Origin: Zygnema circumcarinatum SAG 698-1b
Lineage: Eukaryota; Plantae; Zygnematophyceae
DNA: 64,000 nucleotides
Assembly: GCA_037447605.1 (NCBI GenBank)
Contig: CM074811.1
Coordinates: 806,001 to 870,000, forward strand
Direction: 5' to 3'
Position 1 is the first letter of the stretch. Each line of letters begins with the position of its first letter. The position numbers and the translations under genes are program-made. A model generated the notes under the pieces. It was not told the origin of the DNA. It was given only the letters and a program-made list of their open reading frames with translations, and made no database searches. Below, in pieces: positions 21,433 to 44,753 of the stretch.

Positions 21433-24400
21433 TTGATACGTGAGGCTGCCGATTCTGTGACCCGTGTCACAGCAGCCATGGATGAAGAGCTGCAACAAGA
21501 GGGACAAGCAGATCTTCATGAATTTTCAGATGAAGACTTAGGACATCAAGAGGAGCACACGATACGAAATCCAAGGACGGATTCAGACTCAGAGGAAGAA
21601 GCAGTCAGAGAGAGACTGAAGATGGGCATCACAGAAGACAACCCTTACCCCAGTTTGGCATACCTTGAACAAATTGAGTCAATTGAAGAACTGCAGCGAC
21701 TCCATCTAGGCAGTGATGGCCATAGATTTCGCTGGCGTTATGCACGCAGAAGAATCAGGTTGTCAGCCTGCCCAGTTGCTGTTACGGCTGTAGATGCTGT
21801 AAAGAGAGGAGTTCCTTTCGAACCTGAGATCCTCTCTGCAGCCCACCAGAGCAAGTCCCACGTGACCTCAGTCGACCAGCTACTGCACCAGGGGCCCCTT
21901 CCAGCACAGTAGCAGCACACAGTCCTACAGCAGAACAAGGGATTCCTCAGAAGACACCCTCACCCCCTGCGTTCACAACTTACCCACCCGGCAGCCCCAG
22001 GCGAGCTGCTTCAGGGGCAAGAGCATGCCGATCGCAAGGTCCCACCAGCTTTCGCACCAACCTGCAGAGTAGCACACGTTTCAGATCTGAGGTCCCCAAC
22101 AAGATGGAAGAGATGATGACAAAACTGATAGCCATCATCCCTGAAAAGAGTGAGGTGAGAGATACCACGGGTATCATCACTAGAGGATTCACTGGAAAGC
22201 AAGAAGATGCAGATGTTAGTGTAAAGTAGTTAGGGACTTGTTGTACACTAAGTTGTTGGTACTAAGTTCTAAGGAGGGGTGTGCTCAAAAGTGTCCACAT
22301 TGTACGGAGGGGCGTCTAGGCGACCGTACAAGTCTTTAAGGGGTGTGCGTATAGCGCGCGAGTCTGATTTGGCAAGGCAAGGCATCAGAATGTCGGTGGA
22401 GCCAATCAGTGGTACGATTTGGAAGGCCAAGACCATGGGTGTACGGACATTGGTCGGTGGCGAGGCGCGGCGCGGCGGAGTCAGATGTGACGTGGCGCGA
22501 CGCGACAAATCGAGAAGTGACGAGGCGCGAATCAGCGCGCGGAGCAGAACTGACGAGGTACGGAGTCAGCAATNNNNNNNNNNGCAAGAAGGGAGGAGGG
22601 GTGATGGCAGGTATCCCAGAGATGAACGCAAGAGGATTCACGAGACGAACTTGATGTTCTCAGATTGGGGACCTAATGATGAGTTTGTCGGATGTCTTAG
22701 AGTTGAAAATTCAGCTAAACCTTGGGTGATTGATTCCGGTGCTTCAAGGCACATGTGCGTGGACGACTCACTCTTTGCAGAGAAGGAGACTTTGGAGGGA
22801 ACCAGCTTCGGTCTACTTTCGGCTTAGCGGAGGAAGAATTCACCGATTGGCATAGAGGCCCAGGCAGTGGATTGGAGGAGGTGCTCGGGGAAGCATGAGA
22901 GGGTTGTCCATGTTGTGGCATTGCTCCATACTCGGGACTCACAGTTAATTTCCTCTCTGTTAGTCAGCTGTGTGAGAAGGACTATGGAGTATGGTTTGAG
23001 AAGGGTAGTTGTGAGGTCATTCACAAGGAGACAGGTCAGGTCTTGTGCAAGGGAATTCAGCAAGGTGGGCTTTACTTTCTAGAGTGGAAGGAGGCTCAAG
23101 GGCTGAGCTATCCCGCCAAGGACCCTGTAGAGGAACCCATTCACCATAAGATAGATCAGGACCCGACTGGGAGGGAAGGGGATCTTTAGAGCAAGCATTG
23201 CGGGGCTGAGGGGGCGGGGATTATTTCGCCAGCGACATTTGGAATGCGCCGGGCTAAGGGGTTGAAAGACCCATCACCGAAAGGGTGGACATTAGTGGTG
23301 GTGAGGTATTGTGCATTCGGGGATCACTCGGAGTTAGTGAGCTCGAGGGGAGGCGGGCTCTGGGGCTTGTTGCATCGAGCAAGGATGGAGTTGAAGTGGA
23401 GGGTCCTTTCCAGCCCGGGGTAGTGGAGGCGACCCGAGGTACAAGGTTGCAAGCCCACAAAATGCGGTTCTTTGTTTATGAGGGATTCGTGAGAAAGCGC
23501 CCGAGGTCCGAATGTGGAAGCGACCAAGTGAGGTCGAGGGGGATGATGATGATCTCGGGCCTTTGGATCGAGAGGCGGCTTGTTGGACAAGGGAGCATAC
23601 ATTTAGTTGTGGGACACTAGGGGATTGTAGTGGTCTCATGGAACTAGGGCCCATGGGGAACTAAGTACCAAGAGGGGGATTGTTAGTGTAAAGTAGTTAA
23701 GGACTTGTTGTACACTAAGTTGTTGGTACTAAGTTCTAAGGAGGGGTGTGCTCAAAAGTGTCCACATTGTACGGAGGGGCGTCTAGGCGACCGTACAAGT
23801 CTTTAAGGGGTGTGCGTGATAGCGCTGGGCGAGTCTCTGGATTTCGCGTGCGCAAGGCATCAACGCCGCTGAGCCACCGCTGGTAATGCATTTGGAAGGC
23901 TAAGACTATGGGTGTACGACATCGGGTTTGGCGAGAGGCGCGGCGGAGTCGATGTGACGCGGGCGCTGACGCGGTCAAATCGAAGCGATTTGTGCGCGTA
24001 ATTGGCCAAGGCGGAAAGTGTAACCAATCGGATTTGCGGTACGCGAGCCGCGAATGTTCATTTTGGGAGGACAAAGGGCGACCTGGCCGGTGCCGGTGAA
24101 AGGGAAGGCCTGTACGTTCCAGGTCGGTGGCGCTTGTAGGCTTACGGGGTCCCACATGACGCCAAATGTGGGGAGTCAGATCCTACGGTGGAGGACTCGG
24201 CGGATGGAGATAAAGGGGCGGATCTGGCCGGCTTGTGATGTGCTGGATCCATGCAAGCCTACGAGGATCCAACGGCGCGAGATTAGGATCGGGATAAGGG
24301 TCTTGCAAGGCGTTGCATGTGCGGCCGTGACGTGACAATGTCACTAATGGCGCCATATTGTATTTAAGGCTTAGATTGTTTGGTAGAAGTTAACCTTCTC

Positions 24401-24994
24401 GTGACTTACATTGGGGAGTGAGGCTATCTTGCTTAGGGCCTAGGAGATAGTGGGAAGAGTTCAGCTTGTAGTGGGTGGTTTATTCACGTAGCTTGAGTGA
24501 AGGTGCTTGAAGCTTGGCTCTAGTGTTGTCAAGTTGTATTTCATCTTTATCTTAAGGAGTTTTAGGCTGGTGGCTTTCTCCTTACATTTTCATATTTCCG
24601 CTGAGTTGTTCTCTTGCATTTAGTGTGCTTTGTGTGATTGAGCAATTCATTGAAGATGTCGAGTTCTACCCAAGGTAGAGGAGAAGTGGCAGCCCCACCA
24701 AGAGAGGGCGCTGCAACAACAGCAGAGGCCTGGCTGAGACATCTGGAGGAAAAGGCAGCGCAAGCAGACCTGAAGGATGACTAGTGGATCAAGCTGGCCC
24801 TTGGGGCGCTGGAAGGAGAGGCCGTCAATTGGAAATTGTCCCGAAACTGGCACAAGGCGGCTGTCGTTGGCACCCTGACTAGGGACACATTCAAGCAGGC
24901 TTTCAGACAACGCTGGATTTCAGATCCAATCACTGTGCTAGACCGACTCCGCTACATAGAGTGCTACAGTGATGAGCGGCTGTTTGAATTCACT
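21433..24994 (+). pseudogene. gag: Gypsy gag, split by the nested element at 22214-24721
   Basis: Removing the insertion and one TSD copy restores RGFTGKQEDAE|AWLRHLEEKAAQADLKDD*WIKLALGALEGEAVNW...TFKQAFRQRW, a retrotransposon-gag-like segment. In-frame TAG at 24782. Confidence 0.8.
22214..24721 (+). mobile_element. Non-autonomous Ty1/Copia-type element (gag/protease only, TR-GAG-like) nested in the Gypsy gag
   Basis: LTRs start TGTTAGTGTAAAG at 22214 and 23681, with the first ~135 bp nearly identical. PPT AAGAGGGGGAT at 23670-23680. The 3' LTR ends CAACAACA at 24721. 5-bp TSD GCAGA at 22209-22213 and 24722-24726. Internal WVIDSGASRHM protease and FLSVSQLCEKDYGVWFEKGSC...GGLYFL; no INT/RT/RH in the gap-free stretch 22584-23680. 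Confidence 0.88.
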
Positions 24995-27900
24995 NNNNNN
25001 NNNNGTCAACGGCGCCAGCTCCTCTGGCACTGCTCCACCGGTTACCCCCCCTGTCAGGAGAACTTCCGTCCTCCCTCCTTCCACGGGTCATCCCTTGGGT
25101 TCCATGCTTGAGGAGGATACTGACGATTTCACTGAGGAGGCGCCGACAGCGGCACAGCCAGAGCCGATAGCGCCAGCGACAGAGGACATGCACGTGAATC
25201 CTCCCCATCGCCCTCGGGCGGCCCGTTTCTATCCCCAAGCAGCCGATCGACGACCACCTCCCCCGACAGATGGCCTATCCCTGATTGAACGCATGGTTCA
25301 TCAGCTTATGGGGGACAAGGCTAAGATCGGAATTACCTTGTCACAGTTGATGCAGCTGGTTCCAGGCGCTGCAGCTGTAGTTCGTAAGCTGGCCGACAGT
25401 GCAGAGGCCACTCTGCAGCCGCCCACGGTTCCCATGGCACCTCCTCCGGGTATCCCCTCGCCTGCAGATATACACCACATGGCCACTGCGCCTCTTCCAG
25501 ACCCTGTTCGCTCGCCACGCCAGCCTCCTCGCCAGATTCATGTCCTCCCTCTGATACCAACACCCAACGTGCGCATCATTGTCAATGTATGGCTGAATGG
25601 ACATCCTAGCAAGGCCATGATAGACACTGGAGCTATGCGCACAGTTCTGTCTAAACCAGTGATGAAGGCTGCAGGTGTTAAGTTGGACAAGACACTCAAA
25701 CCCATCCCCAGATATGTTGGGGTTGAGGGTAGTCTGCATGAAGGTTTGGGCAGTGCACAGGTGATCATCAGCCTTGGAGAGATGGGAGCCATAGTGAATG
25801 CGGTCATCACTGCCGCTGAGCATTATTCTATCCTGCTTGGCTCAGATTGGCTCATTGCAATGGGGGCACAAATTGACTTTTCTACGTGTCAGCTGCACTT
25901 ATCTGCTGGAGGGACAGATTGCTCCTTCCCCATCATACTTGAGTCCCTTGCCACCTCCGCCTTCCCCAAACGACACGCCACGGCGCAGGTATCCTACCCA
26001 GAGATCAACATGTATCATGCTGCCGGCAGTCCCCATTCTTCCTATGGTTCTGCCAATTCTGATACTGAGGAAGAGACTCCCACTCCTGCTCCTCCGGGTC
26101 CAGCCCTCTGTGCGCAGACAGAAGACCTTTTGCCGCCGGTGATAGCTGCACCCAGCTTTCCCCCCCACGAGACCATCAGTGATGAAGAGTGGCTGGAGAT
26201 AGAGGGTCAGATGCGATTGGGGCCAGCAGTACTCTCTGACCCAATCAAGCATTCTCAATTGCGACAAGTTCTACGTCGCAATCACCTAGTCTTTGCACGC
26301 CATTCATTGGACATCGGAAAGACCCACTTGATTGAACATCACATCGATACTGGGGATTCCCCTCCAGTGATGACCATGACCCCTTATCGCTTTTCCGCTG
26401 CTCAGCAAGCCGATGTCGAAAGACAAATTGATGAGAATGTTGCTGCCGGATTGATGGAACCCGGAGAAGGTCCCTGGGCCAGTCCGGCTGTTTTGCCACC
26501 AAAGCCAGATGGCACCCTTCGCTTCTGTGGAGACTATCGAAAATTGAACGCCATGACGAAGTGGGATCCATATACGTTGCCAGATGTGGACCTTATCCTC
26601 CATGGCGTTTCTCCTAATGACCAGTGGTTCTCTGCACTGGATATGCAGAAGTCCTTCTGGCAAATCCCTTTGCGGCAGGCGGATCGCTGCAAAACAGGTC
26701 TTCGCACGGCCACACGATTCGTGCAGTGGACAGTGCTTCCCTTTGGGCTCAAGAATTCCAGCCAAACTCACCAGCGCCTGGCCAACCAGGTTTTTGGTCC
26801 CTGTCGCGCCTTTTGCGAACCATACGTGGATGATGCTTCCCTCCACAGCAAGGATTGGTCCTCCCATCTGCAGCACATTGACCAAGTATTGCAACAACTC
26901 ATCAGTGCTCGTTTAAAGATTGCTCCCAAGAAGTGCAAATGGGGCCATCAGGAAATCACTCATCTAGGACATCGTCTCGGCATCGATGGGCCGAAGCCAT
27001 CCCTCGACAAAATTGAGGCGATTGACCTTATGCCAGTACCACAGAACCTCACTCAGCTCAAATCCTTTTTGGGGCTCACCTCATTCTATCGCCGGTACAT
27101 AGAGGGTTATGCCCTTATCGCGCGTCCCCTACACGCCTTAGAAAAGCATGGAGTCGACTATGAATGGAGCAGGGCGCAGGATTTGTCCTTCCATGCGCTC
27201 AAGAGTGCCCTCCTTCAGGCTCCTTGTCTGCATCAATTCGACCCCACCCTGCCCACAATTATTGACGCCGACTGGAGTCAGACGGGCTTTGGGGCAGTGG
27301 CCAGTCAAGCATTCTCTGATGCTGAGCACCCTGTCTGTTATGCTACCAGGGTTTGTTCAGACACTGAGACTAAGAACAGCCCTACTGAAGGTGAGGCTGC
27401 GGCTATTCTCTGGGCACTTGAGAAGTTTAAGCTCTTTACAGCTTACCAGCCCATTGTCATTCAGATTGACCATATGCCACTCACTTGGTTGCACATTATG
27501 GCTACTCTACGTCCCAAGTTTACGTTAGGTGATGAAGTCAGAGGAGTATAATGTCCTCAAGGTCACTCACCGTCCCGGACGGAGTCACGGCAATGCAGAC
27601 GGCCTCAGTCGAAATCCTTCGGCTCCACTTCTCTGTCACGACCCGGGCGTTCCTGAACCCATCCCTCCACCCACCCTTTTGAACCCTGAGCATCTTCCCA
27701 TCGAGCTTTTCATTGCCGATCAAGCTCTGCATGATGTCATCTTTGCGGATGGGCTGATTGATATGCCTGCCACGGCCACCACCCTCCATCGCTGGCAGGA
27801 CTCTGACTTCACCCACGGCCATCCTCACGCGGATCCTTGGGAGCTCCTCATGGATGACGACGGCGACGCTCCCTTCCTTCCTCCCCATTTCCCTAGTGCC

Positions 27901-29177
27901 AATGATGTTCATTCTGACTCCTCTCTCGTGCGTTACGTCATGACTCGGACAATGCCTCCTTTTATCCCGGATACTGAGAGGGCTCGGCTGCTTCGCCGCG
28001 CTCGGAACTTCTCTGTGGATGACGATGGTCAGATTATTTACCTCCCCTCCAGCCTTCCTGTTCCTTTCCCCAACGAGCGCATGGAGATTCTGGATGTCGC
28101 CCACGATGCCCAGCCGGGCGGATTCCACCTTGGCCAGAGGAAGATGGTCGCCATGCTGCAGGAGCGGTATTATTGGCCTGGACTCCATGGCGCTGTGGGC
28201 CGATATGTCGAAACTTGCACAAGTTGTCAACGCGGCAAGCGCTCTGCTCCCCCCGACCGCCAACCCCTAGAGATGGGTGAGATCCCTATACGAGGCGTTG
28301 CAGAAGATTGGAACATTGACACATTTTCTATTCCACAGCTCGGCACCCCATCTGGATACATTAGGGTATTCTTAGCAGTGGATAGATACACCAAATGGGT
28401 GGAAGTTCACGCAACCGAATCCAAGCACTCAGTCCACTCTGCTCGCCTCCTGATAGACATCATTCACCGTCACTCTCTCCCTTACTCTGTTCACTCTGAC
28501 AATGGCTCAGAATACAAGGGGGCGTTTGCCAAGCTCATGCAAGACTTTCGCATCCATCACCGCACCTCTAGCCCCTACTCCCCCTGGCAGAATGGGCTTG
28601 CAGAACGTACCATACAGACCGTCAAAGACGCGTGCGTTCGCGGCTGCGCGGAGCTGGAGGCGGACTGGCGCGAGGTCATTCCCTCCCTGGTCTTCACTTA
28701 CAACACTTCTGTTCACTCCTCCACTGGCTTCTCTCCCTACGAGCTCCTCTATGGACGTAAGCCTCGCATTCCCCTTGACCTCCTTTCTGTGAACCCCTCT
28801 TCCTACGATGATCGCCTCCCCGGTCGGGTAAGCGCCCAGCTTCGACTCCTGACCTCGGCTTCCAAACCCCTAGATTCAAGCGGCCTCCCATCCAGCGAGC
28901 GGCATGCGGGCGTAACTCACCGACTTTGGCGAGCGGCAGCGGCTGCTCTGCCCAATCGGGTCGCGCCCACGTCGGCATTTGGCTGGGAATCTGCATAAAA
29001 CCGACTCAGCGGGCCTTTCCCTGGTTGGGCCCTTTCATTTGTGTCGGTCCGTCCGACATTCCAGGCTGGGCCATCATTTCGGAAGGCCCTGACTCTAGTG
29101 GGAACGCCCGGCGCTGGCGTTCACACTGGATCGACATTAGCGCGCTCCCGTCAGCTGTTCCTCCCAGCGATGGGTGA
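24969..29177 (+). pseudogene. pol: Gypsy pol: aspartic protease, reverse transcriptase, RNase H, integrase with GPY/F motif
   Basis: ORF 24969-27551: MIDTGA, WASPAVLPPKPDGTLRFCGDYRKLN, FSALDMQKSFWQI, LPFGLKNS, YVDD, IDADWSQTGFGAV, EGEAAAILWAL. Frameshift near 27525 into 27529-28998: H-H-C-C zinc finger, WNIDTF, VHSDNGSEY, SPWQNGLAERTIQTVK. A further shift leads to PWLGPF (28926-29177 frame). Confidence 0.93.
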
Positions 29178-29690
29178 CCGTTTCGCGACGAAGCCGCGGT
29201 CTCCTCCATTACCCCCCACCGCCGCGGCGACTCCTTATTGGTCATTTACACTTCCCGCCTTTTGCCGCCGCCAACATTTTAAGCCAGCACATGCGTGCTT
29301 CGATTTGGTTCCTCGGTTCGACCCTGCGGCCTTAACCTAATTCTCATCCTCTTGCTCCTCCCAATTTCTCCACCATGGATCCACCAGCTTTCCCCTCCAC
29401 GTGGGTGCCACCTACCCAGGTCAGCCCATGCAGCGCTTTCGCAGTGCGGTCATACCACTCCTGGCGAAGATATGCGTGGGGCTTCTCCCCGCGACCACCT
29501 CGCCCACCGCGCCTCCGTCCCCCATCATCACCCCAATCTCAGCCACTTCCTCCGCTTCCCTCGGATTCTGTCTCCCCTCCACTTTTCCTCCTCACCCTTG
29601 TCATCCTACTCCGGCCCCACTTCCCTTCTTCTCTCTTCGCTTCATTTAAGCCGCTTGGCATTAAACATTCCCCGGCATGTGCTACGGTCT

Positions 29691-30647
29691 TGGCGTAGTG
29701 GAGCCTGCGCTTCGGCGGATCCTTTGTCCGGTTCAGTTGTACTTGATCGCCTGCCTCTTGAGAATCACGGATCAGCCCGAATCCAGGAGTATAGCGGAGG
29801 ATGCAAGAAAAGCGATTACCATGGTGGCGGCCACGAACCCGACTTACATCATCCAGCAAGGCACTTTTCGGGCGCCCGCCAATCGCGCCGATAGTTATTA
29901 GTTGACCTATCGCCGTCGGCCAATTTTCGGTGGTGGTTAATGTCGAGAGACTGGCACTACTAAGACTCAGGATTCTTGTCCGGAGATAGATAGATGGGAT
30001 GTCCCAGTGATGCTAGTTTATGCTTAGTCTTTGAGCAGTATTTGTATTTCTTTGTGTGGTTTGTTGTCTTGTTCTTCTTTTCTTCCTCTCAAGCTCGACG
30101 GATGCTGGTTAGAGAGAGAAGGTTCGGCTGCAAAGAGGAGAGTCTTCTTCGCGTGTAGACATCCCATTATTGACCAGACAAGCATTTGGATTGAGAAGAC
30201 ACTTATATTGTAATGAGAATCCCCAGCCAATCGCTGGCTGGGGTGAGTTTCAAAGACACACCCTTTTTCTAAGCTGATTCCTATCTTCCCTTTGCTGCCT
30301 CTATGCCAAGCTCCAAACTTGCTGTAGCCTGCCTTCCATTCCTCCCAATGACCAATGATAACTAGGAGCCTAGCAAAGAGAATAGCTGAAGAGAGAACAG
30401 AAGAAGAGAACCCCCAGGGGAGGGCTCTTTGCGTATCGAGTCCGGCCGCCGGCGGGAACATCTTCAGGATCCCTACGTCTTCCGCTGCGCGTACCTCTGA
30501 ATCCCCCGGTTCCTGGCGCTATACTGCAGGCAGACCCACAGCCCCAATCCAACCCTTCATTAGTTTCAGGACAGATGCACTAGTTGCCGTACAGCACCTT
30601 CAGCTAGCTCAGCAGTCTCCTCTCAACCCCACTTATCTTGTGCTACA
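29691..30647 (+). repeat. Gypsy 3' LTR
   Basis: Direct repeat of 20755-21395. The exact termini are ambiguous (see findings). Confidence 0.8.
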
Positions 30648-31226: not shown

Positions 31227-34192
31227 ATGGCGGAGGAAGGCGCCCTCCCTCCCCGCAGGCCCCTCCCTCCCTCCCCTCCCCGCCCTCTCCTCGCCTCTGG
31301 CCGCCCCCGCGTCCCGTCCCCTCCTGTCTCCGGCGGGCGCTTGGCCGCGATGGCGCGCGCGCGGTCTCTCTCTCTCGCGGCGGCGCTCCTCCTCTTTGCC
31401 GCCGCCGCCGCCCCGCGCGAAGCCGCCGCTCAGGCCATGGACCCGCGAGACAGTGAGCCGCCGCGGCCCGCCCGCCCGCCCTCTATGGAAGCAGGGGAGA
31501 GGCGGCCTGCCCGCGGCGGGGCCTCTGTTTGTGCTTTTTGAAGCGGACCGCGGCCTCAATCCAATCCTGCATCTGCTCGCTCTTGGGCGCAGGGACCGCT
31601 CTTCTCGCTCTCAAAGCGGCATTCTACAACGGACAAGATGTCCTCACCTCCTGGAAAGCGAGTAACCGCCTCTGCAGCAAGTGGCGTGGGGTCACATGCG
31701 GCGACTACGGGCTCGTTACTGAGCTGTGAGCCACACTTTGACTGAACAGCGCTTGTGATGTTGGGGGCTCCACGGATTCCATAGCTGCTGAACTGCAGGC
31801 TGAGGAGCGAGGAGCGTTCTGTGGAAAGAATCCTCCGCAGAAAGCGGCTAAAAAGGGCCGCCCCGAGCAGTCCTTCTACTGCCCGCAGCCCTTTCTTCTT
31901 CTGACACTCTCGATGCTAACCTGCATTATGCAGAGATTTAGAATTCTCCGGCGTTTATGGAAGCATTTCACCTTCCATTGGCAACCTTACGAATCTGCAG
32001 TACTTGTAAGTATTTTTCCCCATAAATCTGAAATGAAAGTGATAGAAATGCCAGACAGAGATATGCCAGTGATAGAAATGCTAGTCGTGGCAGCAAGTTT
32101 ATTTAGTGCCTATTTTTTTTTTTTCTGGCAGATACTTGGATAACAATGCCTTAACGGGGTCTATCCCGGATTCTATCGGCAACCTTGCGAATCTAGAAAT
32201 ATTGTGAGTATTTTTCACAATAAATCTGAAATGAAAGTGATACAAATGCCAAACAGCGGAATGCTAGTGATAGAAATGCTAGTCGTGGCAGCATGTTTAT
32301 TCAGTGCGTATTTTTTTTTTTTTTTTCCAGATTCTTGGATTTGAATTACCTAACGGGGTCTATCCCGAATTCTATCGGCAACCTTGTGAATCTGCTCTTC
32401 TTGTAAGTATTTTTCCCCGTAAATCTGAAATGAAAGTGATAGAAATGCCAGACAGAGGAATGCCAGTGACAGAAATGCTAGTTATGGCAGCATGTTTATT
32501 CACTGCCCCTTTTTTTTTTTTTTGGCAGAGATTTGAGTTCGAATTCCCTAACAGGGTCTATCCCGGATTCTATTGGCAACCTTGCGGCTCTGCAAAGATT
32601 GTAAATATTTTTCCCCATAAATCTGAAATGAAAGTGACAGTAATGCCAGACGTGTGAAGGGAAATGACACATTCTCACTTACAGCACACACATGATGAAC
32701 ACAACACACAGTCCCATTGGACCAGTACAAAACACAAACACTTTCTTTATTTCATCAGAGTACTCCTTACACTTCACTTCATCCTCTTTTCTCTCATCCT
32801 CTGTTGCGTTGCTGCTAGGCAAGTCTTCTTTTTCTACTCATTGTCTAAGCTTCCAAAACACACCTTCCTGAATCCTGCATCCATCTTGCGACGCTTCACC
32901 TTACACTTCTCTTCCTCCTCGGACTTTCCCAAAAGCTCTCACACACGCGGTCCCTTTCATACGTACACTCCGTACATCATCCTTACATCTGTCCGTTCAA
33001 CATCCATACTATACATATTCCGTACAAGCTGCAGCATCACAACCCATCACAAGACAGAGGAATGTCAGTGATAGAAATCCTAGTTGTGGCAGCGTCTTTA
33101 TTCAGTACCCTTTTTTTTTATTTTTTGGCAGAATCTTGGAAGAAAATTCCCTAACGGGGCGTATCCCAGATTCTATCGGCAACCTTGTGAATCTGGGGGA
33201 ATTGTAAGTTTTTTTAAAAGTGATAGAAATTCCAAACATAGGAATGCCAGTGATAGAACTACTAGTCGTGGCAGCATGTTTATTCAGTGCCCTTTTTTTT
33301 TCTTTTTGGCAGATGGTTGGATTCTAATTCCCTAACGGGGTCAATTCCGGATTCTTTCGGCAACCTTGAGAGTCTGCATAACTTGTAAGTATTTTTCCCC
33401 ATAAATCTAAAACGAAAGAGATAAAAATGCCAGACAGAAAAATGCCAGTGATAGAAATGCTAGTGGTGGCAGCTTGTTTATTAAGTACCCTTTTTTTTTT
33501 TTTTCTTTTGGCAGAATCTTGGAAAAAAATTCCCTAACGGGGCGTATCCCGGATTCTATCGGCAACCTTACGAATCTGGTAACATTGTAAGTATTTTCCC
33601 CCAGAAATCTGAAAAGAAAGTGATAGAAATGCCAGACAGAGGAATGCCAGTGATAGAGATGCTAGTCGTGGCAGCATGTTTCTTCAGTGCGTATTTTTTC
33701 TTTTTTGGCAGGCTCTTGCGTAATAATTCCCTAACGGGGCCTATCCCGGATTCTATCGGCAACCTTACGTATCTGGCCGACTTGTAAGTATTGAAAAAGC
33801 TGAAAGCCCTTCGCCTTGTATTAGATCTTACTGACGTGCTGAGAATCTTCCAACCAATCACGTCGTAGTGCCAGATACGCGTCAGATTCTTTCCTGCGCC
33901 ACTCCTCCGATCTGTCCGCTGCCGTACCGTTCCTTCGTACTTCCTAGTGTCGGTGCCTGCGAGCGGTGCCTTCCGCCCTCGAGAGGACACGTGTCCCCCC
34001 AACTGCGCGCGGCCCTTGGCGGCATCCCCTCCTCCATGCCATGCCATGCCATGCCATGCCATGCCATGCCGCGCTGCGCAGAGCCCTCCGCCCCCTCGCC
34101 CCTCCATGGTGCCGGGAACCTGCTCATGGGTCGGTTGGCACGTGGCAACTTCGAGCTTCGGTTTGCATTTGAGCAATCACGCGACCGAGTTT

Positions 34193-34228
<36 letters not shown>

Positions 34229-36478
34229 NNNNNNNNNNTTTTTTTTTTTTTTTTTTTTTTTTGGCGCAAAACATCCGCCGAGCTCGTGAAACTTTTTATG
34301 AAGATCGGTCGATGTTAATTCACATGCAGACGCTTTACTAGTTTTGAGGGGCGTCATCCCGTCTTGGGAACTTCGTTAACCTCGTTCCTCGTGAATTCGT
34401 ATAATTTGTATTAGTGTGTATGGCTTTTTTCCTGACATTATAAATGCAGTGACTTATTGCACCTTGAAAAGCAGCAACTTTCGATAATATGTATTTATGA
34501 TTGCGTGGCAAATCTTTGCCGCGTGGTTGTTTCCACCTTTGGTGTTTATATACAAGTAAAATTTTAATCTCGCACTGCCTTTTTGTGCGACTGCGTTTGA
34601 GAATTCGACTATAGAACGTGGAGTTGAATGCCTGATTTACTCCTGTTCGTTTCAGAACCAGTCTTTTTACTTTCGTTGAACTTTCTGTCGTTATGTATGT
34701 CTGCAGGGACCTGAGCAACAACAAACTGGAAGGGAGAGTGTCCGGCTTCATCTCTAAACTCACCCGACTGAATAGCATGTAAGCACCGCTGCATCGATAA
34801 CTCTGTATTCGCAGTTTGAATTTTTGCTCTTGGCCAAGCATTTATACCTCTCGAACTATTACATTTATTTCGCTCTTGCATGAGTTTTAAGGGTATCTCA
34901 TATTTTTGGTCACTTCTGTCACGGGGGGGGGATTTTTTGACGAACTATAGCGCGCACGTTTGCATGCGAGAGATTGGTCTTCGTTGTTGAGATTTTAGGT
35001 TTCAGAGTTTACGGATTAAGACTAGGGTTTAGGGTTTAAGGTTTTAGGTCTAAAAACTCGAGGGGTTGAAGGGCATGTCCGTTGAAGGGTTTAGAAGCCA
35101 TGGGGGTTTAGTGGGTTCAGGGTTAATTTGATTGCAGGTAGAATTGATGAAGGGAAAGGCATAGTGATTCAGGGGTTCAGTGTTTGAAGGCTGAAGGTTG
35201 CGTAGGGTCGTGAAGATGGAGTTAGAGACTTTGCAGACAGCACAAGCGAATGTTTCAGTGGCTGTGACACAAGGAAGATTAGAACGGGTTCTGATGGAAA
35301 GTTCTTCTCTCTCACGCTATGTCTCTAACGCGCCACTCTTAATGTCATCAGGCAGTTAAACAACAACAAGTTGACTGGCTCCATTACTCAAGCGTTCACT
35401 TACTATAATCACCTGGAGATCCAAGACAACTACTTCTCTGGGCCAATCAATATTACAGCGGATGGGCAACCATATTGCGTCGCTACCATGTATGCCAACA
35501 ACTGCATTTATCGCGATATCACAGGATGTGGCGCAGCTCAAGAGCAGAGACCTCCGCAAGAGTGCGCGGCCTTTTGCCAGAGCGGTTCTCCCGAGGGAGC
35601 GTGCGGGGGCAGCGGCACGTGCGGGTACGACACGGCCACGTGCACATGCGACAAGGGATATGCGCTGGCATCGGGCACGTGTGGTGAGTGGCAACTTGCT
35701 GCTTGTTTATACTCGTAAGAAAGGTGAAGAAACGAGTGGCATAGGTTGTGGAGACTATCGCATTGCTATCAACTTTTACACTGTCGTTGCTATTAGAGCA
35801 CACTGAATGCGATCCATTTGAGGCCGCCAATAGAGGAGATTCAATTCTCGACCTTCTAGAAGCACATGGCAAGTCCAATGCTCGACCCAATCCAATCCCG
35901 TGCAAGCTGCAACATATCTCGGCTCCATTTGGAGTAGCTAGATAACCTGCGGGTTTGACTTTTCTGCTTTCCAAAGAGAAACATGCGCAGCTCGAGAAAT
36001 GACACATGAATCTGATTGTCCGTGGAGATGCATATAGCCTGAGATGCACATAGATGATGAAATATGCTGTGAAGTTTTGAAGTAAGTTAATTTTCTTTTT
36101 GAAGGGTTTTCATTCGATCTGCACCTTCCCAGAACGTTAATAAGGACGTGTTTCGATTAGAATTTGTAAGCTATGGAAAAAGTGAGTTCGCCTTGATTAT
36201 CATCGGGAACTCACAGAGTGCCCTGCATTTCTGCAGCTTCACGATCCCCGCCTCTGCGTCCGCCTCCTCCCCGTCCTCTGCCTCCTTCAAAAAGGCCCCC
36301 TCCACGTAAGCCTCCTCCTAGCCGTCGACCCCCTCCTCGAAGCCCCCCTCCACGTAAACCTCTTCCTAGCAGTCGACCTCCTCCTCAACGTCCCCCTCCT
36401 CAGCGTCCCCCTCCACGTAAGCCGCCTCCCAGCCGTCGACCCCCTCCTCGACGTCCCCCTCCGAGCCGTTCTCCTTGA
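31227..36478 (+). CDS. Secreted plant-type LRR protein: signal peptide, LRRNT, ~11 LRRs, Cys-rich/EGF-like module, Arg/Lys/Pro-rich tail (no TM or kinase)
   Basis: Exons: 31227 (or 31350)-31452, 31593-31725, nine 72-nt phase-2 exons (31934-32005, 32132-32203, 32331-32402, 32529-32600, 33132-33203, 33313-33384, 33515-33586, 33712-33783, 34707-34778), 35352-35683 and 36237-36478. All are GT-AG with compatible phases, giving 485 aa from ATG 31350. Motifs: MARARSLSLAAALLLFAAAAA, RTALLALKAAF...LTSW...CSKWRGVTC, LxLxxNSLTGxIPDSIGNLxNL, QRPPQECAAFC...CGGSGTC...CTCDKGY, (R/K/S)PPP repeats. Confidence 0.9.
31934..33790 (+). repeat. Tandem array of eight ~198-bp exon+intron units
   Basis: Unit spacings are 198, 199, 198, 603 (199 plus a 404-bp insertion), 181, 202 and 197 bp. 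Introns share gtaagtatttttccccataaatctgaaatgaaagtgatagaaatgccagacagaggaatgccagtgatagaaatgctagtcgtggcagcatgtttattcagtgc-polyT-ggcag. Confidence 0.95.
32653..33051 (-). mobile_element. 399-bp solo LTR inside LRR-array intron 4
   Basis: Termini TGTGA...TCACA, flanked by AGACG/AGACA (5-bp TSD, one mismatch). Removing it restores the standard 199-bp unit. AATAAA on the minus strand suggests the orientation. Confidence 0.85.
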
Positions 36479-37510
36479 GCCCCTCCTCCCGTTACCGATG
36501 CTGGTACTCTTCACCTTGTCCCTTGACACCTCCTATGGCTTCTGCGTAGTGTTGTCTTACTTCTCATCATTTTGGAATGTTTGGATTCGACTTTGCACAA
36601 TCGTTGGACTTGAAGATGCGTTGCAGTTAATACCTGTTTTGTTATCATTAGGCTATCTGATGGGAAGTCAGCTTTTGCTTTACGAGAGATCCAATATAAT
36701 CCTCTTAACAAGACACTAAGAGTTATCTTATTGCATCAAATTCCTGGAGAGTTCATTTGTTGCATTCAAATAATGGATGCTTTACTTAAAATCTCCGCCA
36801 TTCGTTTCCCCCCTTTCCTTCAAGATTCACCTTTCTTCATCGGCCTGCTCCTGACGGTCTCCTCTGCATGCAGGCGTGCCTTGAAGCGGCGGATCGGGGC
36901 CTGCGCGACGACACAACACCGACCGACCGCGGCCGCAGCGAGTGCACGTACGACATGCGACTTTTGTCGTATGCGAGAGCGGCCCATGGGGCGTGTGACG
37001 CCTCTCCTCCCTCCGCACCTTCAGAGGAGGAGGCGATCAAACTTAGAGTATGACTCTACAGTAGTGCGCGTACCTGCACATGCATGCCATGGGGAGGGAG
37101 TGGACGCACCATGGCAGTGGCATGCACAGGGGATCCATAAAGACACGCTTTGGGGATGGATGGATGGATGGGTGCATGGATGGATGGATAGATGGATGGA
37201 TGGATGGGTGCACTGATGGATGGATGGATGGATGGATGGTGGATGTTTCTCGTTGGCATTGCGGCGTCATGCAGACAGTTGATCGCGGCCTTTGGGCAGC
37301 AGAGCATGATCGCGTTTTAAATGTCGAGATATGTGATAAGTTGACAATTGTGCCAAGGAATGTCATAATTTGCCTTTGGTCAGAATTTGGAACATTTTCA
37401 CATTTATTTTGGTCTCTGGCACTGCAAGTCGATCTGCTCGAAGGAGAATGGGACGGGCGGGATGAGGGCCAGGTTGCTTCCATCTCCCGGTTCCCCTCCC
37501 TTGATTCCTT
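36130..37510 (+). repeat. Segmental duplication copy A (last intron end, Pro-rich last exon and 3' region); copy B at 45084-46430
   Basis: Colinear similarity of roughly 85-90% by eye, from gaacgtt...taaggacg through the exon to ...cttgattccttc. Confidence 0.9.
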
Positions 37511-39487
37511 CTTGACTCTTCTGCTCCCATTAGGCCAACATTTCTATTTCAACCCTAACCCGAACAAATTCAGGGTTTCAAATTCAGCCTCCATGCCCTC
37601 CTCCTTCTCCATGCCTTTCTATCCCCGCCCCCCCACCGGCTCCCGTGTTTTCATGCGCCCCATCCTCCCGTTCCCCGTCAGCAGTCCCACAGAAGGCGCT
37701 ACGCGTGCCCGCTTGGAGAAGGCCGAGGCGGAACAGTTACTCCGTGCTGCGGAACAGCGTTGCCGTTCCGCCGTCGCCGAGATGCATAGAAGCAGTGAGG
37801 AGCCCTCGTTCCATGGCGCGCTGGTCCGTGCCCACCACCCCCCTCTGCCCCCGCGGCGACTCCTGCGCGGCCACCGCTCTGGGCAGCCAATAGGGGGAGT
37901 CAGACCCCTCCGCTCCCCCCCCTCCCCTGCCCTCCCCTCCCCTCCCCTCCCCTCCCCTCCCCTCCTCTTTTTCTGGACATTCCACCCCCCTCGTTTTCTC
38001 CTTTTCACTTTTGACTTCCAACAATGTGCGACAAAAGAAAAGGGGATTTGCATTGGTCTCAAGATGGTGAGGCCATCAAATAAACATGGGCAAGGTCAAC
38101 ATGGGAACCACAAGAAATTGCAAACCGAGAAGAGGAGAGACGAGGAGGGGAGGGCAAGGGAGGGCAGGGGAGGGGAAGGGAGGGNNNNNNNNNNGCGGAT
38201 CGGGGCCTGCGCGACGACACAACACCGACCGACCGCGGCCGCAGCGAGTGCACGTACGACATGCGACTTTTGTCGTATGCGAGAGCGGCCCATGGGGCGT
38301 GTGACGCCTCTCCTCCCTCCGCACCTTCAGAGGAGGAGGCGATCAAACTTAGAGTATGACTCTACAGTAGTGCGCGTACCTGCACATGCATGCCATGGGG
38401 AGGGAGTGGACGCACCATGGCAGTGGCATGCACAGGGGATCCATAAAGACACGCTTTGGGGATGGATGGATGGATGGGTGCATGGATGGATGGATAGATG
38501 GATGGATGGATGGGTGCACTGATGGATGGATGGATGGATGGATGGTGGATGTTTCTCGTTGGCATTGCGGCGTCATGCAGACAGTTGATCGCGGCCTTTG
38601 GGCAGCAGAGCATGATCGCGTTTTAAATGTCGAGATATGTGATAAGTTGACAATTGTGCCAAGGAATGTCATAATTTGCCTTTGGTCAGAATTTGGAACA
38701 TTTTCACATTTATTTTGGTCTCTGGCACTGCAAGTCGATCTGCTCGAAGGAGAATGGGACGGGCGGGATGAGGGCCAGGTTGCTTCCATCTCCCGGTTCC
38801 CCTCCCTTGATTCCTTCTTGACTCTTCTGCTCCCATTAGGCCAACATTTCTATTTCAACCCTAACCCGAACAAATTCAGGGTTTCAAATTCAGCCTCCAT
38901 GCCCTCCTCCTTCTCCATGCCTTTCTATCCCCGCCCCCCCACCGGCTCCCGTGTTTTCATGCGCCCCATCCTCCCGTTCCCCGTCAGCAGTCCCACAGAA
39001 GGCGCTACGCGTGCCCGCTTGGAGAAGGCCGAGGCGGAACAGTTACTCCGTGCTGCGGAACAGCGTTGCCGTTCCGCCGTCGCCGAGATGCATAGAAGCA
39101 GTGAGGAGCCCTCGTTCCATGGCGCGCTGGTCCGTGCCCACCACCCCCCTCTGCCCCCGCGGCGACTCCTGCGCGGCCACCGCTCTGGGCAGCCAATAGG
39201 GGGAGTCAGACCCCTCCGCTCCCCCCCCTCCCCTGCCCTCCCCTCCCCTCCCCTCCCCTCCCCTCCCCTCCTCTTTTTCTGGACATTCCACCCCCCTCGT
39301 TTTCTCCTTTTCACTTTTGACTTCCAACAATGTGCGACAAAAGAAAAGGGGATTTGCATTGGTCTCAAGATGGTGAGGCCATCAAATAAACATGGGCAAG
39401 GTCAACATGGGAACCACAAGAAATTGCAAACCGAGAAGAGGAGAGACGAGGAGGGGAGGGCAAGGGAGGGCAGGGCAGGGGAGGGGA
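36889..39487 (+). repeat. Apparently identical 1306-bp tandem duplication (36889-38184 / 38195-39487) bounded by N gaps; probable assembly artefact
   Basis: The ORF track gives identical translations at an offset of 1306. Both copies end at 10-N gaps in GA-rich tracts. Includes a (GGAT)n microsatellite. Confidence 0.8.
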
Positions 39488-40647: not shown

Positions 40648-42587
40648 CTAATGCTCTAAAAATGCTTCCATATCCCACTGCTCTCGACTAGGACTAATAG
40701 CTACCGCCGATGCTGGAACACTTTCATCTGCATAGTAAGCATCAAAATCAAAATAAACAGATAAATCAATGAATGGTTGGAGATGTTGCTCTTGTAGAGT
40801 GCTAACGTCCTCCTCCATAATGGTTTCATCCAGATCATCGGTAAACGATTCTGCAGGTAACTCCCCTTCAGCCGTCAAATCCCCCACTTGTACCTCCTCT
40901 AAAGTGATGTATCTAGTCAGGCGGCTCTTCCTTTCTTGAGGTGGATTAAGCTCACTCTTCCAAACTGCAAGCATCTCAAGATTATCCACCGTCATTCTGT
41001 TCCTCAAGTTGGTCTTGGTTAGGCCCAAAGTAGAAAAAAGTCGTTCCACATCAACTGAATGGGGAACCAGGGAAAAAATGATCTTGGCTAACTTGTGGAG
41101 TTCAAGAGCCCCGAATATCTTGTCCCAATATTCTCGGACTTCAAAGTGTAAGTTTTCTTCAAACTTCTTGTCTCCATTCACATACCCTGAAAACTCCGTT
41201 CGAAGACGTGCCATCTCTACTCCAGTGAAAATCAACCACCTGTAGCACCACACTACGACAATATTCCAGATGACTTTGGGAGTGAACTCTTTTGATGTAG
41301 CAAATTTCTTGTATTTGGGGTTGAGGAATAAAGCTAGCACAAAAATGGAATCTTTTTCCAAGTATGGACCAGCTCTAACCGAGATTCGTTCAAGCAGATG
41401 TTGACGGACTGAAATTAGGGACCCTGGCAAGTCCAAGTCAATCAATAACTTGTAGAGTCCAAGAAATTCTGCCAACACCGAGTCCCTTTGATGCGTCATA
41501 TCTCTCTAGGCGAACTTGGTGCATCACCTGGCGGTGCGTAAAACTTGGAACAACTACTCGTTCCTTCTGAAGTGCACTGTATCTCCAATAATGTTCTTGA
41601 TTCGCATATCCACACTAGGATTGTTGTCTTTGCCTGCCACCTCCAAGCAATATTTGAATCCTTCCGAGAACTCTTGGACACTCTCACATACGAGTACCAT
41701 AGAATACCAACGTGTCTCACAAAAGGTTGAAAGCCACCTCTTGATGTTTGCCAATTTCATCCATTTCTTCAGAGTTGAACTCCAAAAGTGAGACATGCTG
41801 AAGAAATTAACTATCGTCTGGTTGGCCTTGAACACTTCCTTGACTGAAGACAAACTTGCTATATCCCTAGTCAAGCTATTAAAAGTGTGAAGAATGCAAT
41901 TGATAGAGACTACACCAGGATTCTCTTCCAAAAATCTCCCCCTAAGATATGTCATAACAGTAGGATTATCTGTGACAATAGCACGAACTGACTTTGAAAC
42001 TGATAGTCCGACTTTAGCCATGACTTTTGATAAAAGGGTCAAAAGATTGTCCGCTGTTGGCCTATTTGTCAGGTGCTCGATACTTAGGATAAGACCCCTA
42101 CCTTCCCCTGTTAAAGCCATAAATCCAAAAATTTGATTGCCAGAGACATCGGTCCAACCATCCAATGCTAAAGTAACATTTGTAATCTGGGATATCGTCT
42201 CTATTGTCTTTGACCAAGTATCACCATAGGCCCTAGGAAGAATGGTGTTTGTCAGTGTGCTCCGAGAAGGTAATGTGTATGCAGGGTTTAACTGTTCAAG
42301 AAAATCTTTGAAATGCGAGTTTTCTACCACTCGAAAGGGTAAACCAGAGCTGATGCAGCTATTGAGAAGTCGCATATGGAGACCATCCAATGTGTCTTTA
42401 CTCATCGGTTGTGGGTAGTAGTCAGTCAAATGATGTGATCCACCTGAATTTACATCCGGGACTTCAGAGCGGCTGCGTTTTGGTAGGATTTTGAGTTGAC
42501 TTTGATTCCCAAGTAGACGTGAACGGGCTAACCTAAGTGCCCTAACGTCCTTCATTTGGCCATTTGGATTGGCTTTTCTCATCAATC
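40648..42587 (-). pseudogene. hAT-superfamily transposase (DUF659-type catalytic region plus C-terminal dimerisation domain), disrupted and 5'-truncated at a gap
   Basis: LPFRVVEN..F...LNPAYTLPSRSTL, VTLALDGWTD, AIVTDN, INCILHTFN, CETRWYS, LFLNPKY, SLVPHSVDVERLFSTLG...LRNRMTVDNLEML. Three in-frame stops or compensating frameshifts at 41500-41556. Confidence 0.88.
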
Positions 42588-42597
42588 NNNNNNNNNN

Positions 42598-44753
42598 CGC
42601 GCTCCACCGCACTCCACCACGCCGCGCTCCTCCATGATGCTGGCGGCGCTCCACGACTCTTGGAGCTCGCCCCATCCAGCGCCGGAAAACTCACTCGGGG
42701 CCCGCCATGGCCAGGGGAGGAGTGTCCGTACAGCTTACCCCTTCCCTCAATGCGTCGGCTTTCTAGAATTCCGTATCCACGCGCGCGCCTCTCCAGCGCC
42801 ACGTCCGAATGTCCACGTGTCGCATGCCTCTCGGGAAGACTGTACGGTCTTCCGCCAAAGCAATAAGCAACATGTGACAGCGCAGCCTATCGCTGTGTGC
42901 CACGTGTCCAACCTAGACCCCTCCAGTTCAGAGTATCAGAACAGGACCTAGCGCCCTGTTCCCATTACAACTAGATCACCTAAGGACGACCGACACTACT
43001 GAGGATCGTACGGTGTACTTTCTAGGCTTATATCCCTATCGTACACTACATTCCCCCTCTCGATCCTAGTCGTGGAAAAGTCCTACGCCAAGGAGAATAC
43101 TATTCCTCCAAACGGTCTCCCCATTCGTACCTTTTGTCATCATGTCCGCTGCCTGATCTTTCGTCCCCACAAATCCGACGGCCACAAGTCCATCTCGAAC
43201 CTGTTGTCGTACATAATGATACTGTAGTCGAATGTGCTTAGATCTTTTGTGGAAAACTGGATTCTGGACCAACGCAATTGATGATTGGTTGTTAGTAAGA
43301 ATCTTTACCGGGATTTGGGGTCGCTGGCACTCAGCGAAGAAGTTATGGAGCCTCCTTGCACGCGTGACAGGCAACGATGTACTCGGCCTCTGTACTAGAC
43401 AGCGCCACCGTCGCCTGCAAACTGGAACTCCAAGTAACCGCTCCTCCTGCATTGATGAAAGCATATCCCAATGTCGATTTTGATGTATCGATGTCGCCAC
43501 CCCAATCCGAATCGGTATAGCCGTACACTCGCGTCTCAACGCCACTGGTAAAATTAATGCCGAACTTCGTTGTTCCCTTCACATAACGGAAAATCCGTTT
43601 CACGGCTTCCCAATGGGCCGTACCTGGATTCTGCATGTACTTGGAAACTGTACTGACTGCTTTAGCCAGGTCTGGTCGAGTTCCAACCTGAAGGTACATC
43701 AAGCTCCCAATAGCTGACTTGTACGGAACTCGGTCCATCTGCTTCTTCTCTGCCTCCGTCTGAGGTGACATGTTATGGGAAAGATGTACGGATGGGTCCA
43801 TGGGACTGGTAACCGGGTGACAGTCCTGCATGCTGAATTTGAGAAGCACGTCCTTTGCATACTTTTCGTGACAAAGAAACAAGTTGCCTTCATGCCCCTT
43901 CTTCAACTGAATACCCAGTAAGTACTCTGCCTCTCCCAAGTCACTCATCTGAAAGTTAGTTTTCAACAGCTCCTTGAGGTTCTAAATGCTCCTCAAAGAA
44001 GGACTAACGATGATAAGGTCGTCGACATAAATCCCTATATACATTACTTCTGCTCCTTCACCTTTTTTGTAAACTGAGGCGTCGGTTTCAAACCGAGTGA
44101 AGCCATTCTCTGTAAAAAGGGTGTCGATCTTGTCATACCAGATTCGGGGAGCCTGTTTCAGCCCATACAGACTTTTCACAAGCCTGCATACTAAGTGCTC
44201 TTGGCCCTCCTTCACAGTTCCTTCCGCCTGGTCCATGAAAATTTCCTCGTCCAAGCTACCATATAAGAATGCAGTCTTGATATCCAATTGGTGCACATGC
44301 ATGCTTTCAGCCGCTGCAATGGATATGAGGGATCTGAGGGAGCTGAATTTCACTACCGGGGCAAACGTTTTAGTGTAGTTGTAACGAACCTGCCTACAGC
44401 AGGGTTCGAACTCAGGACCTCCCGGTATTCACCTAAGTGCTTTACCATTAAAAAGCAACCGCGGATGTAAGTACTCGGCCATACAACCCATGTATAGCGT
44501 TTCGCTACAGTAGTCTAGCTCATACTGCTGGCTAAATCCCTTTGCTACCAATCTCGCCTTATATCTATCAATGCTCCCATCTGATTTCCTCTTTACTTTA
44601 AATATCCATTTGCATCCCATCGCCTTCCTCCCCTTTGGCAGCTCCTCCAGCCACCAAGTCTGGTTTTCCTCAAGACTACCTAGCTCACTTTTAATGGCTA
44701 CTTCCCATTTCTCAGCATCTACCCCCTCTAAAGCTTCTGAGAGGGTTTGAGAT
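42598..44753 (-). mobile_element. 3' half of a degenerate Ty1/Copia retrotransposon (RT, RNase H, PPT, 3' LTR)
   Basis: GCKWIFKVKRKSDGSIDRYKARLVAKGFSQ, TFAPVVK, HQLDIKTAFLYG, KSLYGLKQAPR, IYVDDL, YTDSDWGGD, STEAEY, NPVFHKRSKHI, QAADMMTKG. In-frame stop at ~43982 and a frameshift at ~43400. PPT GAGAGGGGGAA precedes the LTR, which starts TGTAGTGTA at 43050 and runs into the gap at 42597. Confidence 0.92.
44380..44509 (-). mobile_element. 130-bp solo-LTR/TRIM-like insertion containing a tRNA-like sequence (Helenus-like)
   Basis: Interrupts the Copia RT at ...LDY|NYTKTFAP. Termini TGTAACGAA...TTCGCTACA, perfect 5-bp TSD GTAGT (44375-44379, 44510-44514). The minus strand carries A-box-like TAATGGTAAAGC and B-box GAGTTCGAACCC. 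Confidence 0.85.

Follow-up and report, generated by a model that had tools for sequence, protein, structure and literature searches.

Fast-changing ligand-face codons in a tandem array of leucine-rich repeat exons of the alga Zygnema circumcarinatum

One-repeat exons in described LRR genes and at the Zygnema locus

Leucine-rich repeat (LRR) domains probably expand through duplication of exons, with adaptation at the xxLxLxx face afterwards. In the group 5 LRR-kinase genes of rice, introns split the codon of the first leucine of xxLxLxx in phase 2 and leave exons of 72 nt that each encode one LRR (Sun and Wang, 2011; PMC3050792). For plant genes built with one LRR per exon, an origin by exon duplication has been proposed, and positively selected sites have been reported in the LRR domain (PMC3050792). 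Here we describe an array of eight such exons in a predicted gene of Zygnema circumcarinatum SAG 698-1b (Zygnematophyceae; GenBank assembly GCA_037447605.1, contig CM074811.1, positions 806,001 to 870,000 of the forward strand). This whole stretch of 64,000 nt is called the window below, and all coordinates count from its first letter. Zygnematophyceae are the sister lineage of land plants, in which the beginnings of plant recognition at the cell surface are being actively investigated. To our knowledge, the duplications in most LRR genes are too old for their introns to carry a signal, but introns and silent sites still align at this locus, so that one gene supplies its own neutral clock. Measured against that clock, scaffold codons changed at ~0.06 of the neutral rate and ligand-face codons at 5–10 times that rate.

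The array exons (Table 1) were delimited by cutting at the conserved anchor GGCAACCTT. All eight have an AG acceptor and a GT donor, and splicing them in silico yields one open frame of 24-residue plant-type LRRs. Tandem Repeats Finder (TRF) reported the array with periods of 198 and 202 nt (scores 955, 749, and 713), and nhmmer profiles recovered 7/7 array introns (E 1e-11 to 1e-41) and 8/8 array exons (E 1e-13 to 5e-22), with no match of either profile outside the array on either strand of the window; the repeat is far beyond chance. Introns 1–7 measure 126, 127, 126, 531, 109, 130, and 125 nt. The DNA repeat runs from column 43 of LRR exon 1 (31973–31976) to 10 nt inside the intron that follows exon 8 (33792), so the first two thirds of exon 1 lie outside it, and the introns on either side of the array have no relationship to those within it (p-distance about 0.55; ~0.53 for the intron after exon 8). 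An initial annotation, made from the letters alone, had described eight tandem units, each a 72-nt phase-2 LRR exon plus an intron, and had listed the residues of each xxLxLxx strand. The exons are confirmed at 31934–33783, and the listed residues are reproduced exactly when the exons are joined. It had also called the introns nearly identical; their homology stands, but their identity is 80–90%, with a mean p-distance of 0.151 among the seven.

Intron 5 has a 17-nt deletion, and intron 4 carries an insertion whose limits are approximate because of the internal 15-nt repeat of the intron. On its minus strand this insertion has a match to the archaeal C/D-box family sR52 that stays below threshold (32753–32804; 29.5 bits against a gathering cut-off of 50, E 0.0037) and is most likely due to chance. 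The 15-nt motif (GAAATGCCAGTGATA-like) is repeated 3–3.7 times inside each array intron in the TRF output (32030–32085, 32427–32482, 33420–33465, and 33619–33666), and the array introns carry a strong polypyrimidine tract. A dispersed element, such as an introner or a miniature inverted-repeat transposable element, was also considered as the source of the introns and rejected, since nhmmer showed no copy outside the array within the window. When JGI metagenome contigs were scanned for exact patterns of the intron core and of the exon scaffold, no match came up; neither of these two results bears on the rest of the genome.

With plant genes for LRR receptor-like kinases (LRR-RLKs) and receptor-like proteins (RLPs), the array gene shares the 24-residue LRR, the LRRNT_2 cap, the 72-nt exons, and the phase-2 split of the first leucine, which occurs at nine 72-nt exons and also at the end of gene exon 2. 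Unlike plant LRR-RLK genes, it encodes neither a transmembrane segment nor a kinase, and its host is an alga. What would set it apart from plant LRR genes is that the introns of seven adjacent units can still be aligned (85% identity) and that their silent sites match, so that the array looks like a duplication caught young.

Brown-algal ROCO genes and vertebrate gonadotropin receptors, too, have symmetric LRR exons of 72 nt in phase 2 (PMC11378527). In the brown-algal LRR-ROCO genes, for which LRR exon shuffling has been proposed, these one-LRR exons go together with intragenic duplication and with positive selection on the concave face (Zambounis et al., 2012, PMC3341825; PMC11378527). The likeness to the array gene lies in exon size and phase, intragenic duplication, and concave-face selection; combinatorial diversity has been proposed for ROCO genes, and alternative splicing has been reported. 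The Ectocarpus ROCO exons follow the register GxxPxxL...LxLxxNxLx, with the junction outside the beta-strand, and their introns carry stray or inverted LRR exons (PMC3341825). ROCO proteins are intracellular ROC-COR GTPases of stramenopiles, whereas the array gene lacks ROC-COR and has its junction at xxL/xLxx; nhmmer found no stray or inverted LRR exon on either strand of the 64 kb.

As every unit is a symmetric 72-nt exon of phase 2-2, simple arithmetic keeps the loss, gain, or skipping of a unit in frame. The initial annotation had seen in the junction inside xxL/xLxx a feature of a receptor-diversification cassette. Its position and its frame-neutrality are correct, but it is not special to this gene, being standard in rice LRR-kinases (PMC3050792): the split is the canonical plant intron position, inherited and no special device, and frame-neutral duplication or deletion arises only as a by-product of it. 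Since symmetric exons are widespread, in-frame skipping and unit gain or loss are generic and are not evidence of a cassette. Such a programmed cassette, in which near-identical introns would allow exons to be skipped or repeated in combinations, or to be recombined in somatic cells or the germline, by analogy with Dscam, lamprey VLR, and brown-algal ROCO, is in our judgement most improbable. It can point to the symmetric units with their near-identical splice signals and to the alternatively spliced LRR exons reported for Ectocarpus ROCO (PMC11378527), but the same exon symmetry is found in ordinary, constitutively spliced plant LRR-kinase genes, and no transcript of the gene turned up in the searched collections. 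The window holds no further exon or intron copies that could act as donor cassettes or as a template repeat, hallmarks of VLR, Dscam, and diversity-generating retroelements (DGR), and as for a dedicated reverse transcriptase (RT) or deaminase, a further hallmark, the only RT nearby is that of a Ty3/gypsy pol. Docking or selector RNA pairing gained nothing from the array introns, which fold no better than shuffled sequences (z -0.18, 0.00, -0.25, +0.84, -1.02, and -2.66, one of six below -2; no significant RNA structure), and an Rfam scan matched no family in the array. The ~7% private divergence of each unit also argues against frequent recombination between units. A working diversification device, with frequent in-frame gain, loss, or reshuffling of units between haplotypes or with combinatorial skipping, would present many binding faces for recognition of pathogens or mating partners and, if true, would be a streptophyte counterpart of the brown-algal ROCO proposals; we give it very little credence.

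Rate contrast between the ligand face and neutral sites

The hypervariable (HV) residues of the xxLxLxx motif line the LRR solenoid's concave face, as is established from structures. All rate comparisons concern exons 2–8, that is, seven short units of one sequence, and use the mean pairwise difference (pi) and Nei-Gojobori or Jukes-Cantor (JC) distances; HV codons are x2, x3, x5, x7, and x8, and semi-variable codons are x10, x14, x17, x23, and x24. The introns (pi 0.13–0.15, JC distance 0.14–0.17) and the third positions of scaffold codons (pi 0.12, dS 0.171) do not differ from each other (Mann-Whitney p = 0.86), while positions 1–2 of the scaffold codons are nearly invariant (pi 0.02, dN 0.010). 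Semi-variable codons have a pi of 0.39–0.43 at positions 1–2 (dN 0.49) and of 0.057 at position 3 (dS 0.085). HV codons reach 0.65–0.69 at all three positions with a dN of 1.81, near saturation. The HV columns exceed the intron columns with p = 5.5e-12 (Mann-Whitney), and when 15 intron columns were resampled, 0/100000 draws reached the HV mean. Parsimony on the maximum-likelihood tree of neutral sites gave, in Fitch steps per site, 2.27 for HV positions, 1.20 for positions 1–2 of semi-variable codons, 0.42 for introns, 0.36 for scaffold third positions, and 0.07 for scaffold positions 1–2.

The ligand-face codons have therefore outpaced the neutral DNA that lies only a few bases from them, at least 5-fold by parsimony and ~10-fold after distance correction, and the semi-variable positions have changed ~3 times faster than neutral. 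With a scaffold dN/dS of 0.06, the array is translated and under constraint; at such a rate, 0.06 of neutral, it cannot be a decaying pseudogene. Relaxed constraint was rejected as a source of the excess, as it cannot lift a rate above neutral, and local hypermutation is unlikely, the intron bases that abut the HV codons being conserved. Positive diversifying selection on the putative ligand-binding face is thus strongly supported, in the form of a rate contrast between a neutral distance of about 0.17 and an HV dN of 1.8. The initial annotation had proposed that the xxLxLxx codons diverge more than the adjacent non-coding DNA and that diversifying selection acts on them; the HV pi of 0.66 against 0.13–0.15 in the introns, and a dN far above intron divergence, bear out both.

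In plant resistance-gene and RLP families such as Cf, Xa21, and PGIP, exposed beta-strand positions of the LRRs evolve faster than silent sites, and the scaffold is conserved. Those comparisons are between paralogous or allelic genes, whereas here they are between repeats within one gene, with the introns as an internal neutral yardstick. The ratio of ~10 stands at the high end relative to such cases.

This yardstick would fail if the introns and the silent scaffold sites were themselves held by purifying selection, through splicing enhancers, intronic RNA, or codon bias, with old HV codons that are simply unconstrained. The threefold 15-nt motif and the polypyrimidine tract of each intron lend this some substance, as short exons often need enhancers. 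It would nevertheless have to be a coincidence that two separate constraints bring introns (0.13–0.15) and scaffold third positions (0.12) to the same divergence, neither structured RNA nor an Rfam match was found, and the exon at 34707–34778, gene exon 2, and their introns do without these sequences despite the same splice architecture. We consider functional conservation in place of youth very unlikely.

Origin of the array

Judging from how the units differ, we favor one burst in which a 198-nt exon-intron-exon segment was duplicated in tandem and the copies then diverged independently under strong diversifying selection, and put its probability at roughly 0.6. The segment amplified to seven copies would have begun with the last third of an LRR exon, run through a 126-nt intron, and ended two thirds of the way into the following exon, and the mechanism would most likely have been unequal crossing-over between neighbouring LRR exons within a short time. 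Each unit would since have gathered ~7–8% of private neutral change; the scaffold codons that determine the fold would have been held by purifying selection, and the five solvent-exposed beta-strand codons would have been replaced 5–10 times faster than neutral.

Several features favor a burst when taken together. The tree of neutral sites is star-like, with internal branches of at most 0.013 (support 27–78%) and terminal branches of 0.02–0.086; 38 of the 49 variable intron columns hold singleton variants only, and no two introns are closer than 9.5%. Each variant of a semi-variable codon is one step away from a single ancestral codon and retains its third base (GCG/GTG/ACG/GAG at x23 and AAT/GCT/AGT/TAT at x24), so that non-synonymous change must have followed the last common ancestor of the units. 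Finally, the array edges lie in the scaffold region of exon 1 and 10 nt into an intron rather than at HV patches, and these positions fit duplication breakpoints better than they fit conversion tracts bounded by mismatched patches. An origin by tandem duplication of exons together with introns, as first annotated, is supported by these data.

The main rival is concerted evolution with protected HV patches, in which units and HV codons would both be old and repeated short-tract conversion would have homogenised the introns and the scaffold, while selection, or a mismatch barrier at the HV codons, spared the latter. It would explain why HV codons are near saturation at all three positions (third-position pi 0.65) and why the number of LRRs, 10.5, matches that of collinear homologues, as would follow had the array gained no units. 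Common to exons 5 and 7 is a tract of ~60–70 nt, made up of the 3' end of the upstream intron and the 5' half of the exon, that resembles one conversion event; the other halves of these exons and their flanking introns differ. In a GENECONV-style permutation test for long shared runs, this pair gave the best global p, 0.059 (18 polymorphic sites), and all others were above 0.17, so that conversion mosaics were rejected by a run test without a significant result. Continuing conversion should also leave shared patches and very similar pairs of units, in contrast to the star-like tree of mostly private substitutions with no pair below 9.5%, and its edges would be expected at the HV patches rather than inside a scaffold block and an intron. 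Moreover, the semi-variable codons inside the supposedly converted blocks form one-step non-synonymous stars with their third bases kept, so positive selection after homogenisation would be needed anyway. The correlations between scaffold divergence and that of the flanking intron halves (Spearman) are not significant at n = 7 and do not separate whole-unit ancestry from block-wise conversion. On balance we regard concerted evolution as a possible but doubtful account.

The array had been annotated at first as homogenised, with crossover or conversion still going on; the star tree, the singleton columns, the run test, and the distance of even the closest pair speak against this. Exons 5 and 7 had further been read as a two-unit duplication. 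They do share GRIPD, and introns I4 and I6 upstream of them share the GTACCC variant, but their common tract is short and its flanks differ, so this is not a duplication of two units.

Some observations weigh against the burst. An omega near 10 over five codons is high, and as the third positions of the HV codons are saturated too, ancient HV codons would be the simpler explanation. The collinear homologues already have ~10 LRRs, so that a net increase by six or seven units would require either that the ancestor was short or that as many units were lost. Selection was read from one sequence with seven short units, and the signal peptide and exon 1 were inferred by eye. The sequence comes from a draft assembly, in which a gap lies 445 bp beyond the array.

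This last point raises the question of whether the array, or the number and order of its units, was created or distorted by the assembler. The window contains eleven 10-N gaps, including the one just mentioned, and a 1293-bp block with (GGAT)n runs, starting 411 bp after the LRR stop codon, is present twice in tandem at 99.85% identity with a 10-N gap directly after each copy. Rather than a genuine duplication, this doublet looks like a case of redundant contigs that the scaffolder put together, and it warns about local assembly quality. The array units behave otherwise: each is distinct, with at least 9.5% intron divergence and unique HV codons, and the joined exons keep an open frame with a conserved scaffold (dN 0.010), which random mis-joins would not do. 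An artefact is thus extremely unlikely in our view. In the long intron after exon 8, a (CCATG)7 microsatellite lies at 34034–34070 and a poly-T run of >60 nt at 34195–34262 is broken by the 10-N gap; the assembly probably broke because of this homopolymer, and further array units could be missing there.

That LRR exons are duplicated and their binding face then changes adaptively is a known process, and knowledge of the mechanism is unchanged by this locus. Its value would lie in a clean young example and in a candidate gene from an uncharacterised family of secreted LRR proteins in a zygnematophyte alga.

Predicted product, relatives, and surroundings

The gene model has 13 exons, all with canonical splice sites, and an open frame of 485 aa. 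Exon 1 joins exon 2 in frame and encodes a methionine, an Arg-rich start, and a Leu/Ala hydrophobic core, judged by eye to be a putative signal peptide. Gene exon 2 closes in phase 2, just where the array exons do within the repeat. The ninth LRR exon completes the eighth strand, AD-L-D-L-SN, across the gap-bearing intron. In the spliced model ten LRRs are in register with the 24-residue plant-specific LxxLxLxxNxLxGxIPxxIGxLxx, and a phmmer search of PDB sequences matched the LRR part to the ectodomains of MIK2, PEPR1, HAESA, and SERK1.

Table 1. Coordinates of the array, the predicted gene, and neighbouring features in the window
Feature	Position	Strand	Remarks
Ty3/gypsy retrotransposon	20759–30640	+	
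Gene exon 1 (inferred), start codon and signal-peptide-like N-terminus	31350–31452	+	GTGAGC donor, phase 1
Gene exon 2, LRRNT_2 cap	31593–31725	+	Pfam PF08263, E 1.3e-8, 35.4 bits vs cut-off 20.7
LRR exon 1	31934–32005	+	only last 30 nt (IGNLTNLQYL part) within DNA repeat; TRF array start 31973
Tandem array	31973–33792	+	7 periods of ~198 nt plus ~40 nt, broken by intron 4 insertion; TRF, repeat-family search, nhmmer
LRR exon 2	32132–32203	+	72 nt, phase 2
LRR exon 3	32331–32402	+	72 nt, phase 2
LRR exon 4	32529–32600	+	72 nt, phase 2; donor GTAAAT
Insertion in intron 4	~32669–33041	+	~400 nt, C/A-rich; nhmmer homology ends 32668–32676, restarts 33042–33050; single copy in window (blastn)
LRR exon 5	33132–33203	+	72 nt, phase 2; ILE-NSLTGRIPD in common with exon 7
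LRR exon 6	33313–33384	+	72 nt, phase 2; most diverged scaffold, 3 private changes
LRR exon 7	33515–33586	+	72 nt, phase 2
LRR exon 8	33712–33783	+	72 nt, phase 2; final unit of array
Long intron after exon 8	33784–34706	+	not homologous to array introns; (CCATG)7 microsatellite, poly-T run, 10-N gap 34229–34238
Ninth LRR exon	34707–34778	+	72 nt, phase 2, same junction position; no DNA similarity to array, missed by exon nhmmer profile
Gene exon 12: LRR 10, half LRR, Cys-rich cap, EGF-like module	35352–35683	+	332 nt; Pfam EGF_2 weak (E 0.027); HMMER and tblastn matches
Last exon: basic proline-rich tail (PPPR/K-type repeats)	36237–36478	+	~80 residues; TGA stop at 36476–36478
1293-bp block, first copy	36889–38181		
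1293-bp block, second copy	38195–39487		
Two adjacent ORFs, DUF659 and hAT dimerisation domain	40651–42675	-	E 3.6e-19 and 1.4e-6
RAY1-like exon	46821–48074	-	Pfam Nucleotid_trans, E 5e-30
Low-complexity ORF	48198–49973	-	Ser/Pro/Leu-rich

The term receptor, used at first for this gene, does not hold: the model closes with the proline-rich tail and a stop. When the kinase-bearing homologues P0002 and P0012 were compared with the window by tblastn, only LRR and cap matches were obtained and no kinase. Since the window has no kinase and the tail is followed by a stop, the product is predicted to be a secreted plant-type extracellular LRR protein and not a receptor kinase, made up of a putative signal peptide, an LRRNT_2 cap, 10.5 LRRs, and an EGF-like cap rich in Cys, with a proline-rich tail at the end. 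It resembles LRR-extensins (LRX) and PGIPs, which are secreted LRR proteins of the cell wall, in its putative signal peptide, its ~10–11 plant-type LRRs, and a Cys-rich region after them, and it is LRX-like in combining a proline-rich C-terminal tail with the lack of a membrane anchor. Compared with the extensin domain of LRX proteins, however, the tail has ~80 residues of PPPR/K/Q/S type with few SPPP or SRPPP (few Ser-Pro3-5) and no Tyr cross-link motifs. The Cys-rich module after the LRRs, unlike that of LRX or PGIP, is EGF-like with relatives only in Zygnematophyceae, and in a phmmer comparison with PDB sequences, a sequence comparison only, it had no LRX match. A fast-evolving secreted LRR protein would be a reasonable candidate for biotic or gamete recognition.

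The nearest relatives are zygnematophycean (Mesotaenium and Closterium), judging from sequence matches. A search with the module of exon 12 returned only 20 matches at E <= 1e-3 among 1.84 billion representative proteins (best E 4e-8, best identity 41%). The ten that were looked up included two from Mesotaenium endlicherianum, one from Closterium sp. NIES-68, one open reading frame (ORF) of a Leptophrys vorax transcriptome, and one eukprot Trinity ORF, and the others are Logan or ENA contigs. The gene has the C-terminal module of a zygnematophycean LRR/Cys-rich EGF-like family after its LRRs, namely NYFSGP, a multi-Cys stretch, and CGGxGxC...CxCxxGY. The same module follows plant-type LRRs in Mesotaenium ME000014S01168 and ME000369S06458, Closterium CLOM_g4383, and the Logan proteins P0001 and P0011. 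The model is collinear with P0011 and P0022 over residues 9–437 (E about 1e-57) and also with P0001, which carries a proline-rich tail as well. In the family members P0002 and P0012 a transmembrane segment and a kinase follow, which the array gene lacks, and the LRRs of the zygnematophycean homologues are not homogenised among themselves. Compared by eye, unit by unit, with the collinear P0011, 3 of 35 HV residues match, which carries no signal, as the proteins are too distant.

Closterium CLOM_g4383 (P0007; 556 aa with ~17 LRRs and the same Cys-rich cap) is an intronless gene at 6001–7671, identical on three contigs (L001, L002, and L003) of two assemblies. The one-LRR-per-exon structure is therefore not common to all family members, and no intron comparison can come from this relative. 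A query with P0022 matched only generic land-plant LRR genes, and the searched protein and transcript collections and JGI metagenome contigs yielded no transcript, close relative, orthologue, paralogue, or population sample of the gene. P0004, a 2335-aa protein from an ENA contig, can be aligned to the model in four ways, each shifted by 176 residues and all equal in score; it would therefore seem to hold near-identical internal blocks of ~7 LRRs and to be another recent intragenic LRR amplification.

As for the surroundings, a Ty3/gypsy long terminal repeat retrotransposon ends ~700 bp upstream of the LRR gene start codon. It has ORFs at 24969–27548 (protease, RT, and RNase H) and 27529–28995 (integrase), and its direct repeats (21229–21397 and 30472–30640) are 99.4% identical, with an adjoining stretch of 74% identity; a 10-N gap cuts the left repeat, and the best match of a pol query was at most 34% identical. 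Downstream, the two adjacent ORFs with DUF659 and a hAT C-terminal dimerisation domain are a hAT-type transposase, possibly split by the gap at 42588–42597. Further downstream lies an exon for a RAY1-like glycosyltransferase of family GT77, a beta-arabinofuranosyltransferase. Its identity with a Logan contig (run SRR8128907) is 75%, with Mesotaenium it is 51% and with Closterium 50%, and with land plants ~43%. A long low-complexity ORF lies upstream of it on the same strand. A cell-wall arabinosyltransferase near a gene with a proline-rich tail may be a coincidence.

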